In this document: piece by piece, positions 49,222 to 60,743 of the stretch
How the letters are laid out: every line of letters begins with the position of its first letter
Position numbering within the stretch: position 1 is the first letter of the stretch
Assembly: GCA_002269645.1 (NCBI GenBank)
Contig: NIVC01000033.1
Location: 609,335-673,334, forward strand
Reading direction: 5' to 3'
Origin: Macrostomum lignano
Taxonomy: Eukaryota
Length of the DNA stretch: 64,000 nt
Notes under the pieces: model-generated
What the model saw: only the letters and a program-made list of their open reading frames with translations
The model's database searches: none
Told to the model about the DNA's origin: nothing
Program-made: the position numbers and the translations under genes

Positions 49222-49290
49222 TTAACTTGCACGTCGTTCGCCGTCTGCAATGGTACAGTGGGTGCATTTCTGGGAGATTTCAGGGTTCAA
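49222..49290 (-). CDS. Membrane protein A, predicted exon 2 (cytoplasmic tail LNPEISQKCTHCTIADGERRAS*)
   Basis: First acceptor (aatcag) after the 5.4 kb satellite and (TGTC)n tract; the phase-0 frame is open for 22 codons and contains CxxC, as does the paralogue tail. Confidence 0.55.
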   Translation of the reverse strand: MNPEISQKCTHCTIADGERRAS

Positions 49291-49302
49291 CTGATTTGCC
49301 AG

Positions 49303-52300
49303 GCAGACAGACAGACAGACAGACAGACAGACAGACAGACAGACAGACAGACAGACAGACAGACACTAAGACCCTAAGGCACTAAGGCACTAAAACACTA
49401 AGGCACTAAGACACTAAGACACTAAGACACTAAGACACTAAGACACTAAGACACTAAGACACTAAGACACTGAGACACTAAGACACTAAGACACTAAGAC
49501 ACTAAGACACTAAGATACTGAGACACTAAGATACTAAGACACTAAGACACTAAGACACTAAGGCACTAAGACACTAAGATACTAAGACACTAAGACACTG
49601 AGACACTAAGACACTAAGACACTAAGACACTAAGATACTAAGACACTAAGACACTAAGATACTAAGACACTAAGACACTGAGACACTAAGACACTAACAT
49701 ACTAAGACACTAAGACACTGAGATACTAAGACACTAAGACACTGAGACACTAAGACACTAAGACACTAAGATACTAAGACACTAAGACACTAAGACACTA
49801 AGACACTAAGACACTGAGATACTAAGACACTGAGATACTAAGATACTAAGACACTAAGGCACTAAGACACTAAGATACTAAGACACTAAGACACTAAGAT
49901 ACTAAGACACTAAGACACTGAGACACTAAGACACTAAGACACTAAGACACTAAGACACTAAGATACTAAGACACTAAGACACTAAGACACTGAGATACTA
50001 AGATACTAAGACACTAAGACACTAAGACACTAAGACACTGAGATACTAAGACACTGAGACACTAAGACACTGAGATACTAAGATACTAAGACACTGAGAC
50101 ACTAAGACACTGAGATACTAAGATACTAAGACACTAAGACACTAAGACACTAAGACACTGAGATACTAAGACACTGAGATACTAAGACACTGAGATACTG
50201 AGACACTAAGACACTGAGACACTAAGACACTGAGATACTAAGATACTAAGACACTAAGACACTAAGACACTAAGACACTGAGATACTAAGACACTGAGAC
50301 ACTAAGACACTGAGATATTAAGATACTAAGACACTGAGATACTAAGACACTGAGATACTAAGACACTGAGACACTAAGACACTGAGATACTAAGATACTA
50401 AGACACTGAGACACTAAGACACTAAGACACTAAGATACTAAGACACTAAGGCACTAAGACACTAAGACACTAAGACACTAAGACACTAAGACACTAAGAC
50501 ACTAAGACACTAAGACACTGAGACACTAAGACACTAAGACACTAAGACACTAAGACACTAAGATACTGAGACACTAAGATACTAAGACACTAAGACACTA
50601 AGACACTAAGGCACTAAGACACTAAGATACTAAGACACTAAGACACTGAGACACTGAGACACTAAGACACTAAGACACTAAGACACTAAGACACTGAGAT
50701 ACTAAGACACTGAGACACTAAGACACTGAGATACTAAGATACTAAGACACAAAGGCACTAAGACACTAAGATACTAAGACACTAAGACACTAAGATACTA
50801 AGACACTAAGACACTGAGACACTAAGACACTGAGACACTAAGACACTAAGACACTAAGATACTAAGACACTAAGACACTAAGATACTAAGACACTAAGAT
50901 ACTAAGGCACTAAGACACTAAGATACTAAGACACTAAGACACTGAGACACTAAGACACTGAGACACTAAGACACTAAGATACTAAGACACTAAGACACTA
51001 AGATACTAAGACACTAAGACACTGAGACACTAAGACACTAAGATACTAAGACACTAAGACACTAAGACACTAAGACACTGAGATACTAAGACACTAAGAC
51101 ACTAAGACACTAAGACACTGAGATACTAAGACACTAAGACACTAAGATACAAAGATACTAAGACACTAAGGCACTAAGACACTAAGATACTAAGACACTA
51201 AGACACTGAGACACTAAGACACTAAGACACTAAGACACTAAGATACTAAGACACTAAGACACTAAGATACTAAGACACTAAGACACTGAGACACTAAGAC
51301 ACTAAGATACTAAGACACTAAGACACTGAGATACTAAGACACTAAGACACTGAGACACTAAGACACTAAGACACTAAGATACTAAGACACTAAGACACTG
51401 AGACACTAAGACACTAAGACACTGAGACACTAAGATACTGAGACACTAAGATACTAAGACACTAAGACACTAAGACACTAAGACACTAAGACACTGAGAC
51501 ACTAAGACACTGAGACACTAAGACACTAAGATACTAAGACACTAAGACACTAAGACACTAAGACACTGAGATACCAAGACACTGAGACACTAAGACACTA
51601 AGACACTGAGATACTAAGATACTAAGACACTAAGGCACTAAGACACTGAGATACTAAGACACTAAGACACTAAGATACTAAGACACTAAGGCACTGAGAC
51701 ACTAAGACACTAAGACACTAAGACACTGAGACACTAAGACACTAAGATACTAAGACACTAAGACACTAAGATACTAAGACACTAAGACACTGAGACACTA
51801 AGACACTAAGATACTAAGACACTAAGACACTAAGACACTAAGACACTGAGATACTAAGACACTAAGACACTAAGATACTGAGACACTAAGATACTAAGAC
51901 ACTAAGACACTAAGACACTAAGACACTAAGACACTGAGACACTAAGACACTGAGACACTAAGACACTAAGATACTAAGACACTAAGACACTAAGACACTA
52001 AGACACTGAGATACTAAGACACTGAGACACTAAGACACTACGACACTGAGATACTAAGATACTAAGACACTAAGGCACTAAGACACTGAGATACTAAGAC
52101 ACTAAGACACTAAGATACTAAGACACTAAGGCACTGAGACACTAAGACACTGAGACACTAAGATACTAAGACACTAAGACACTAAGACACTAAGACACTA
52201 AGACACTAAGACACTAAGGCACTAAGACACTAAGATACTAAGACACTAAGACACTGAGACACTAAGACACTAAGACACTAAGACACTAAGACACTAAGAC

Positions 52301-54812
52301 ACTGAGATACTAAGACACTAAGACACTAAGACACTAAGACACTGAGACACTAAGACACTAAGACACTGAGACACTAAGATACTGAGACACTAAGATACTA
52401 AGACACTAAGACACTAAGACACTAAGGCACTAAGACACTAAGATACTAAGACACTAAGACACTGAGACACTAAGACACTAAGACACTAAGACACTAAGAT
52501 ACTAAGACACTAAGACACTAAGATACTAAGACACTAAGACACTGAGACACTAAGACACTAACATACTAAGACACTAAGACACTGAGATACTAAGACACTA
52601 AGACACTGAGACACTAAGACACTAAGACACTAAGATACTAAGACACTAAGATACTAAGACACTAAGACACTGAGACACTAAGACACTAAGACACTGAGAC
52701 ACTAAGATACTGAGACACTAAGATACTAAGACACTAAGACACTAAGACACTAAGACACTAAGACACTGAGACACTAAGACACTGAGACACTAAGACACTA
52801 AGATACTAAGACACTAAGACACTAAGACACTAAGTCACTGAGATACTAAGACACTGAGACACTAAGACACTAAGACACTGAGATACTAAGATACTAAGAC
52901 ACTAAGGCACTAAGACACTGAGATACTAAGACACTAAGACACTAAGATACTAAGACACTAAGGCACTGAGACACTAAGACACTGAGACACTAAGATACTA
53001 AGACACTAAGACACTAAGACACTAAGACACTGAGACACTAAGACACTAAGACACTGAGACACTAAGATACTGAGACACTAAGATACTAAGACACTAAGAC
53101 ACTAAGACACTAAGACACTAAGACACTGAGACACTAAGACACTGAGACACTAAGACACTAAGATACTGAGACACTAAGATACTAAGACACTAAGACACTA
53201 AGACACTAAGACACTAAGACACTGAGACACTAAGACACTGAGACACTAAGACACTAAGATACTAAGACACTAAGACACTAAGACACTAAGACACTGAGAT
53301 ACTAAGACACTGAGACACTAAGACACTACGACACTGAGATACTAAGATACTAAGACACTAAGGCACTAAGACACTGAGATACTAAGACACTAAGACACTA
53401 AGATACTAAGACACTAAGGCACTGAGACACTAAGACACTGAGACACTAAGATACTAAGACACTAAGACACTAAGACACTAAGACACTAAGACACTAAGAC
53501 ACTAAGGCACTAAGACACTAAGATACTAAGACACTAAGACACTGAGACACTAAGACACTAAGACACTAAGACACTAAGATACTAAGACACTAAGACACTA
53601 AGATACTAAGACACTAAGACACTGAGACACTAAGACACTAAGATACTAAGACACTAAGACACTGAGATACTAAGACACTAAGACACTGAGACACTAAGAC
53701 ACTAAGACACTAAGATACTAAGACACTAAGATACTAAGACACTAAGACACTGAGACACTAAGACACTAAGACACTGAGACACTAAGATACTGAGACACTA
53801 AGATACTAAGACACTAAGACACTAAGACACTAAGACACTAAGACACTGAGACACTAAGACACTGAGACACTAAGACACTAAGATACTAAGACACTAAGAC
53901 ACTAAGACACTAAGACACTGAGATACTAAGACACTGAGACACTAAGACACTAAGACACTGAGATACTAAGATACTAAGACACTAAGGCACTAAGACACTG
54001 AGATACTAAGACACTAAGACACTAAGATACTAAGACACTAAGGCACTGAGACACTAAGACACTGAGACACTAAGATACTAAGACACTAAGACACTAAGAC
54101 ACTAAGACACTGAGACACTAAGACACTAAGACACTGAGACACTAAGATACTGAGACACTAAGATACTAAGACACTAAGACACTAAGACACTAAGACACTA
54201 AGACACTGAGACACTAAGACACTGAGACACTAAGACACTAAGATACTAAGACACTAAGACACTAAGACACTAAGACACTGAGATACTAAGACACTGAGAC
54301 ACTAAGACACTACGACACTGAGATACTAAGATACTAAGACACTAAGGCACTAAGACACTGAGATACTAAGACACTAAGACACTAAGATACTAAGACACTA
54401 AGGCACTGAGACACTAAGACACTGAGACACTAAGATACTAAGACACTAAGACACTAAGACACTAAGACACTGAGACACTAAGACACTAAGACACTGAGAT
54501 ACTAAGATACTAAGACACTAAGGCGCTAAGATACTAAGACACTAAGACACTAAGACACTGAGACACTAAGACACTAAGATACTAAGACACTAAGACACTA
54601 AGATACTAAGACACTAAGACACTGAGACACTAAGACACTAAGACACTAAGACACTAAGACACTAAGATACCAAGACACTAAGACACTGAGACACTAAGAC
54701 ACTGAGACACTATGACTCTAAGACACTAAGATACCAAGACACTAAGACACTAAGACACTAAGATACCAAGACACTAAGACACTAAGACACTAAGACACTG
54801 AGACACTAAGAC
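49303..54812. repeat. (GACA)n microsatellite followed by a ~5.4 kb 9-bp satellite (gacactaag / gatactaag / gacactgag) filling the intron of membrane-protein gene A
   Basis: Direct inspection. Confidence 0.95.
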
Positions 54813-54824
54813 AGCTACACTTAC

Positions 54825-59956: not shown

Positions 59957-59964
59957 CTATAAAG

Positions 59965-60218
59965 GCAGACAGACAGACAGACAAACAGACAGACAGACAG
60001 ACAGACAAACAGACAGACAAACAAACAGACAGACACTCTGACAGACAGACAGACAGACAGACAGACAGACAGACAGACAGACAGACAGACAGACAGACAG
60101 ACAGACAGACAGACAGACAGACAGACAGACAGACAGACAGACACACAGACAGACAGACACACAGACACACAGACAGACAGACAGACAGACAGAAAGACAG
60201 ACAGACAGACAGACAGAC
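59965..60218. repeat. (GACA)n microsatellite in the intron of membrane-protein gene B
   Basis: Direct inspection. Confidence 0.94.
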
Positions 60219-60230
60219 ATCTATACGCAC

Positions 60231-60743
60231 CATCTGACTGGAGCGCCTCTTTCGCACACAGTAGACAGTCAAGCCGATGGCAAGACCGATGACCACCAGG
60301 GCCAGTGGCACGCCAACGAAAACCCCTGTCTCGCGGGACCCGACGTAGCCGGACAGTTTAGTGCAGCTCTCCTTTTGGACAGGCATTTTGCAGTCACCGG
60401 AACTAGTTTTCTCGTCCGCGCAACTAGCGAAATAGGTCCAGTCTTGGCTCACTGAGCAACGCTTCCTTTGCAGGAACTTTCCCTCGTCTCTGAGAAACGT
60501 CATTTTGACGAACAGGCCGTTTACGGTGCATGTCTCAACTTGGAGTCCAACATTCTGGAGCTGCAGCCTGGAAAGAGCTGCGAGAGTGGAAGTCCCGGAC
60601 GAGTCGGGCAGTCGACCTGTTATGGCATCGCAGCCAAGCCGTAGCTGCTCCTTCAACATCGAGGTGAAGCTTTCTTCGCATAAGCCATAATTGATGACAA
60701 TGCAGAAAAGTAGCGCAACGAATAGTGGAGCTGGGTGTCTCAT
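60231..60743 (-). CDS. Unassigned small type-I membrane protein B, exon 1 (paralogue of A)
   Basis: MRHPAPLFVALLFCIVINYGLC (signal-like); CDAITG and VETCTVNGLFVKMT versus A CDALTG and VETCSADGLVIKLT; TM GVFVGVPLALVVIGLAIGLTVYCV then RKRRSSQM and donor gtgcgt at 60230. Confidence 0.75.

Follow-up and report, generated by a model that had tools for sequence, protein, structure and literature searches.

A tandem pair of six-cysteine, type-I-like genes with short cysteine-free tails in Macrostomum lignano

We analyzed a 64,000-nucleotide stretch of the Macrostomum lignano genome (hereafter the window: contig NIVC01000033.1 of assembly GCA_002269645.1, forward-strand positions 609,335 to 673,334), in which two small genes, here called A and B, lie 4.5 kb from each other, both on the minus strand. 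The two genes are paralogous, have two coding exons each, and share a six-cysteine ectodomain, a conserved intron position, a short tail that contains no cysteine, and a hydropathy profile like that of type-I membrane proteins. A first-pass annotation of this DNA had presented them as a co-directional pair with a conserved cytoplasmic CxxC motif. The arrangement of the pair and the translations of both first exons (159 amino acids for A and 171 for B) are exactly as described there, but the motif did not hold up.

Gene B is the better documented of the two and has a GenBank entry already, the hypothetical protein PAA93118.1 (P0006 in our set; BOX15_Mlig019706g1). Its first coding exon (window positions 60231..60743, minus strand, 171 codons) is identical to residues 1-171 of that protein and encodes a signal-like N-terminus, cysteines at positions 38, 72, 96, 108, 118 and 127, a transmembrane helix at about residues 140-162, and then KRRSSQM. 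A phase-0 intron of 344 nt follows (59887..60230, minus strand, GTGCGT...TTTCAG), most of which is (GTCT)n on the coding strand (59966-60219 by Tandem Repeats Finder, TRF). The second coding exon (59857..59886, minus strand) supplies the true C-terminus, NHSTLVEIA, and a TGA stop; it was located by tblastn, with 100% identity across residues 172-180. In fact, PAA93118.1 consists of B exon 1 plus NHSTLVEIA without a single difference, its GenBank gene span of 887 nt corresponds exactly to 60743-59857, and the surrounding GenBank locus is 100% identical to window positions 49857-64000. The acceptor at 59887/59886, CTCCTGTCTTTCAG, stands directly ahead of NHSTLVEIA and the stop, and the same tail is present in the B copies at two paralogous loci, L001 (NIVC01000976.1) and L005 (NIVC01004442.1). 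Because the GenBank annotation of M. lignano was obtained by filtering a transcriptome assembled with guidance from the genome (by StringTie/TACO, together with a de novo transcriptome; PMC5730564), the B junction is RNA-derived.

Gene A follows the same layout on a larger scale. Its first coding exon (54825..55301, minus strand, 159 codons) is 93-96% identical to the UniProt entry A0A1I8J169 (P0001) and encodes a signal-like N-terminus, Cys36, 66, 84, 96, 104 and 116, a transmembrane helix at about 132-151, and then RLRRKRQM, together with an N-glycosylation sequon at N109 and a polybasic juxtamembrane stretch. The phase-0 intron is 5580 nt long (49245..54824, minus strand, GTAAGT...TTGCAG) and is nearly all an 8-nt minisatellite (49361-54813, about 680 copies of AGACACTA) plus (GTCT)n at 49300-49365. 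A six-frame search and tblastn place the second coding exon at 49209..49244 (minus strand), where TANDVQVNAVA and a TGA stop give the inferred C-terminus, with the acceptor at 49245/49244, CCATTGCAG, directly ahead of it. This placement is matched by A0A1I8J169, which ends RQM/TANDVQLNAVA. The acceptor also lines up with that of the RNA-based model of the paralogue BOX15_Mlig026583g1 (P0002, 59% identical to A), which ends RQM/TVNHVRLL and lies at a third paralogous locus, L002 (NIVC01002016.1). A (GTCT)n/(CAGA)n repeat immediately precedes the 3' splice region in A, in B and in all paralogous copies (L001, L002, L005), and the length of the B intron varies with this array: 344 nt in the window, 272 nt at L001 and about 1.6 kb at L005.

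The first-pass annotation had placed the tail exons slightly upstream, at 49222..49290 for A and 59867..59956 for B (both minus strand). These frames are open in the DNA of this contig behind plausible AG acceptors, reading LNPEISQKCTHCTIADGERRAS and VYFNIKAELQISRTVMSCHSCLSEPFYSG. Most of each, however, consists of intron 3' end (49245-49290 and 59887-59956), and the remainder belongs to exon 2 but is translated out of frame. The codons for CTHC (49266-49255, A) and CHSC (59905-59894, B) lie a little ahead of the real acceptors, at a distance of about 10-22 nt. Since the acceptors in the transcript-based models lie further downstream, by 70 nt in the RNA-based model that GenBank gives for B at this locus, the cysteine codons of both motifs are intronic.

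The paralogous loci point the same way. In the B copies at L001 and L005, the first two codons of the proposed B frame are GTG TAA, and in the A-like locus L002 a TGA replaces the codon homologous to the first cysteine of CTHC, with a segment length that differs by 6 nt. Four homologue models and a cDNA-like contig all end without cysteine, the homologue tails being TANDVQLNAVA, TVNHVRLL, NHSTLVEIA and SQHFLVASA. The last of these belongs to P0004, which is 50% identical to B, ends NQL/SQHFLVASA, and is encoded by an uninterrupted open reading frame (ORF) on a 909-bp Sequence Read Archive (SRA) contig (SRR28338163) that retains an Illumina adapter. Among open tails of 20-35 amino acids behind an AG in this window, only about 2-3% contain CxxC, so that finding two looks non-random at first sight. 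The stop codons in the paralogous loci nevertheless make the two CxxC tails a mild coincidence rather than a conserved feature. This coincidence is aided by the composition of the intron 3' ends, which are rich in T, G and C and adjoin (GTCT)n arrays that read ...CLSVCLSV..., such that TGT and TGC codons arise easily. The noted CxxC is thus a splice-acceptor mis-call, brought about by choosing the first AG after the intronic microsatellite, though it was a reasonable call from the sequence alone. Di-cysteine tail motifs of CD4 and CD8 form a zinc clasp with Lck, and the suggestion of a similar clasp here, or of a palmitoylated tail, falls along with the CxxC tail. Spliced models that take other acceptors and leave the CxxC tails unencoded are also the outcome for which the annotation itself had been prepared to give up the tail.

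What does stand is the shared plan of the two proteins. A and B are related at BLASTP E=9e-8, with 25% identity across the whole first exon, and each recovers the exon of the other when the window is translated in six frames (tblastn E=3-5e-5). The hydropathy profile has peaks at residues 3-25 and 128-155 of A and 3-27 and 137-166 of B on the Kyte-Doolittle scale, and the transmembrane helix is followed by a basic cluster, RLRRKR in A and RKRR in B, within a patch that ends QM or QL. With an N-terminal hydrophobic segment, one transmembrane segment and a cytoplasmic basic cluster, both are predicted to adopt a type-I single-pass topology. The GT donor follows the QM codon directly in each gene (GTAAGT in A, GTGCGT in B), so that the phase-0 intron lies at the same place. 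Hydropathy and alignments therefore bear out the signal-like N-terminus, six aligned cysteines, single transmembrane segment, basic patch and common intron that the first-pass annotation had described, and the family can be recognized by the six aligned cysteines, the anchors [V]E[ST]C...G and CD[AI][IL], the phase-0 intron after Q[ML], and a cysteine-free tail of 9-11 amino acids. The corrected A-type and B-type tails also have in common a weak pattern of N[HD]/QH followed by hydrophobic residues. A cysteine at the cytoplasmic end of the transmembrane helix (C150 in A, C162 in B), which could be palmitoylated, is absent in P0002 and P0004.

The six ectodomain cysteines align in every family member, with the single exception of the L001 copy described below. 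By a simple calculation, the chance of keeping six aligned cysteines at 25% identity is about 2e-4. Since all six are kept at this low identity, the disulfide scaffold appears constrained while the remainder drifts or diversifies.

The same family includes the M. lignano proteins BOX15_Mlig019706g1/g2 and BOX15_Mlig012933g1, which are of B type, and BOX15_Mlig026583g1 and A0A1I8J169, which are of A type. In our set, the A type is represented by P0001 and P0002, and the B type by P0004 and by P0003, which groups with P0006 and P0007. Apart from PAA93118.1, which is gene B itself, the copies are 59-99% identical and have the same exon structure and tails. All M. lignano copies are uncharacterised, and what they are called ('hypothetical', 'Secreted protein', 'Conserved plasma membrane protein', 'LRRCT domain-containing') was assigned automatically. 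LRRCT is a cysteine-capping domain that normally comes after leucine-rich repeats. We set aside this label, which UniProt attaches to one B copy, because there is no LRRCT or LRR match at E <= 10 in six members and there are no repeats upstream of the cysteine-rich part. The family forms four clusters at 90% identity, three of them from M. lignano and the fourth (P0004) an SRA-derived contig. A profile of six sequences searched against 1.84 billion cluster representatives retrieved the family itself only, and a search of 5.8 billion 90% clusters with an alignment retrieved its four clusters only, with nothing outside Macrostomum. These searches agree with the annotation's view that the family is lineage-specific, as they gave no flatworm-wide or metazoan relatives beyond that genus.

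The order B then A is found on this contig, at L005 and at the older paralogous locus L002. Exon 1 of A at L005 (16958-17434) is nucleotide-identical to that in the window (54825-55301), with an intact ORF that is unannotated on both contigs. At L002, a B-like copy upstream of BOX15_Mlig026583g1 (5024-5641 of NIVC01002016.1) is frameshifted, being spread over at least three reading frames without a GenBank model, and is probably a pseudogene. An older UniProt model, A0A1I8JL47 (1063 amino acids, 'Peptidase S1 domain-containing'), fuses pieces of this B-like gene with the A-like gene. L001 keeps B, and its similarity to the window stops about 0.5 kb downstream.

Searches of domain and structure databases place the family next to nothing known. 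Pfam returned no match above its gathering thresholds for A, B or all six members, the best being DUF4780 (E=0.015) and Psg1 (E=0.087), far below the cut-offs, in line with the earlier statement that no Pfam family was recognized for the ectodomain. Sequence searches of the Protein Data Bank (PDB), by phmmer with single sequences and with a profile, gave only E >= 1.3. An AlphaFold2 (AF2) model of the ectodomain (99 amino acids, six-sequence alignment) has a predicted local distance difference test (pLDDT) score of 75, with similar scores for all five models, and predicts the order helix-helix-strand-strand-strand-helix-strand. A model of the full exon 1 (pLDDT 66) agrees with it and adds the transmembrane helix. 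Foldseek, run against the PDB with both models, gave no match at E <= 0.001; the generic alpha+beta matches that appeared had E >= 0.03 and template modeling (TM) scores <= 0.43, so that the predicted ectodomain, for which the annotation had proposed this check, matched no known fold. Among the best of these matches, the Knl1 RWD domain (E=0.06, TM score 0.40) was dismissed as topology-only. Alpha+beta rolls in general (Knl1 RWD, cystatin-like, NTF2-like, BLIP/PepSY-like) have in common with the predicted ectodomain a helix packed on an antiparallel sheet, but none of them is extracellular and disulfide-rich and none has sequence similarity to A or B. The likeness is one of simple topology only.

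Substitution rates, estimated by the method of Nei and Gojobori, differ between the available pairs. For B and its L001 copy, which have 11 differences, dS is 0.047 and dN 0.012 (omega 0.26). For A and the A-like gene at L002, dS is 0.29 and dN 0.24, and the omega of 0.82 is indistinguishable from 1 (Fisher p=0.51). Synonymous sites are saturated between A and B, and also between B and P0004, the only non-lignano relative. The high omega of A against its paralogue, together with the 50% identity of B to its sole relative outside M. lignano at saturated synonymous sites, agrees with the earlier description of the family as fast-evolving.

Overall, we consider it probable that A and B are old tandem duplicates belonging to a small family of type-I membrane proteins that is confined to Macrostomum, has two coding exons, and carries no CxxC in its mature mRNA. 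Exon 1 encodes a signal peptide that looks cleavable, an ectodomain of about 100-115 amino acids in which the six cysteines are the most conserved positions, a transmembrane helix, and a basic stop-transfer patch, and exon 2 contributes just 9-11 cysteine-free residues. The mature protein would be a type-I cell-surface glycoprotein with a compact alpha/beta ectodomain held by three disulfides. The cytoplasmic part comprises about 17-20 residues without a recognizable signaling or sorting motif. Because it is too short to signal alone, function would run through binding by the ectodomain at the cell surface, with the protein acting as a ligand, in adhesion or recognition, or as an accessory subunit in partnership with some other membrane protein. 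The fast evolution, the extra copies from recent genome duplication and the single pseudogenised copy suit a surface protein that is dispensable and turns over rapidly.

Several points weigh against this reading. Gene A has no GenBank model on NIVC01000033.1 or NIVC01004442.1, and its splice junction is consequently inferred from homologues; its model may have been removed by a filter against transcripts overlapping repeat annotation, which is described for this assembly (PMC5730564). The composition of the splice sites, measured as pyrimidine fraction, does not separate the first-pass acceptors from the annotated ones, and a minor CxxC isoform, not conserved, could conceivably occur in this single copy. 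The signal peptides and transmembrane helices were called from Kyte-Doolittle hydropathy, the disulfide pairing is presumed, and the AF2 models were built on an alignment only six sequences deep. The L001 copy of B (PAA74119.1, 97% identical, near 10112 of NIVC01000976.1) has lost the first ectodomain cysteine through a Cys38-to-Ser change (LRLGSDAITG), which would leave the presumed disulfide partner unpaired. The omega of A against the A-like gene is compatible with relaxed constraint or with decay of one copy. Finally, an expression look-up with Mlig019706, Mlig012933 and Mlig026583 gave no match in literature full text or in the supplements of Macrostomum papers.

Some of these points, along with the frameshifted B-like copy at L002, would also be expected if one or both genes were decaying, effectively neutral duplicates whose conserved features are left over from recent common ancestry. 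The near-neutral omega of A, its missing annotation on two contigs and the Cys38Ser change all lean this way, as does the genomic setting, since two papers describe the M. lignano genome as neopolyploid with many redundant copies (PMC5730564; PMC10733133). Neutral decay does not readily account, however, for the intact ORFs, splice sites and six cysteines in A, the A-like gene, B and the distant B relative at identities of only 25-60%, nor for the fact that this integrity holds where synonymous sites are saturated (A against B, and B against P0004). The omega of 0.26 between B and its copy, the RNA-derived models for B and the A-like gene, and the small probability that six aligned cysteines survive by chance argue against it as well. 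We therefore regard decay as unlikely.

A more ambitious proposal, to which we give similarly little credence, is that the ectodomain may be a new disulfide-stabilised alpha/beta fold born within Macrostomum, and that A and B may be fast-evolving surface recognition molecules (for instance of gametes, mating partners or epithelia) whose divergence is driven by selection rather than drift. Reproduction-related Macrostomum genes do evolve fast (Brand et al. 2020, PMC7336406). With A and B they share high divergence and a signal peptide, and they too are hard to detect in other genera; these likenesses are context and not evidence for A and B.

It is more doubtful still that the membrane form is a precursor from which the ectodomain, at least that of A, is shed as a soluble factor by a proprotein-convertase-like protease acting at KSVRKRTKKLH. 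Gene A does have 11 basic residues between its last cysteine and the transmembrane helix, including RKR and KK, and UniProt automatically labels one B copy 'Secreted protein'. The polybasic stretch, however, is deleted in the A-like gene and absent in B and P0004, so that it is no family feature; it offers no canonical R-x-K/R-R site with Arg at P4; and the transmembrane helix and stop-transfer patch are kept in all members. Given the downstream acceptors, the interrupted frames and the cysteine-free homologue tails described above, the original proposal of small receptors with a selected cytoplasmic CxxC (IS..CTHC in A, IS....CHSC in B) that joins a partner kinase in binding zinc or is palmitoylated is very improbable.

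The other genes of the window form an ordinary metazoan gene neighborhood. They comprise a strawberry-notch helicase (AAA_34 and Helicase_C_4 domains; 191-8000, plus strand), a gene with an ELMO/CED-12 domain (10525-11852, plus strand), a PHD-finger protein with an ORF of 807 amino acids containing ANPPQS and HLVNPQTNPNP repeats (19698-22121, minus strand), and a protein tyrosine phosphatase (25705-28618, minus strand). Their coding GC content reaches 66%, whereas the A/B region, at about 40%, lies far lower. A Ty3/gypsy-type retroelement at 33218-39912 (plus strand) is broken into several ORFs with RVT_1, RT_RNaseH_2, integrase zinc-binding and rve matches, and has a Ser/Leu-rich low-complexity stretch at 37223-37867, between its RNase H and integrase parts. 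Upstream of gene B, overlapping ORFs at 62385-63064 (minus strand) have a weak MULE transposase match (E=1.3e-3, below the Pfam cut-off) and are probably a decayed DNA-transposon fragment. The region directly upstream of gene A (55554-56402) holds an ORF of 141 amino acids without a Pfam match (55554-55979, minus strand) and a 17/87-nt tandem repeat (55966-56402). In the stretch that separates A from B, tblastn gave a weak match to A (58663-58574, E=9.8), which was rejected as noise.

Long minisatellites, each with its own unit of 8-41 nt, occupy nearly every intron or spacer of the window. Besides the array in the A intron (49361-54813), they lie at 13076-18104, 696-2153, 6407-7109, 9715-10378, 24024-24782, 26329-27133, 27490-28245 and 28967-29705; one array other than that of the A intron is made of 240 copies of a 21-mer. 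The (GTCT)n/(CAGA)n repeat of the A and B introns is also found inside the ELMO-domain gene (11069-11382).

These results change how the pair should be read. The likeness of A and B to CD4 and CD8 is one of general plan only, a single-pass type-I protein with a short tail. The mature mRNAs of A and B lack the cytoplasmic CxC/CxxC that defines those receptors, and their ectodomains differ from the immunoglobulin (Ig) ectodomain of CD4 and CD8 in having no Pfam Ig match, a mixed alpha/beta AF2 model instead of a beta-sandwich, and no match in sequence or fold. The main outcome is a correction, in that the conserved cytoplasmic CxxC should be dropped from the description of the pair. A missing gene model for A is added for NIVC01000033.1 and NIVC01004442.1. 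What remains is an ordinary family, restricted to the genus, whose members are small type-I membrane proteins rich in cysteine, in a genome that has many lineage-specific duplicated genes. As such, the A/B family may offer a small test case for the birth, duplication and decay of orphan genes in a neopolyploid.

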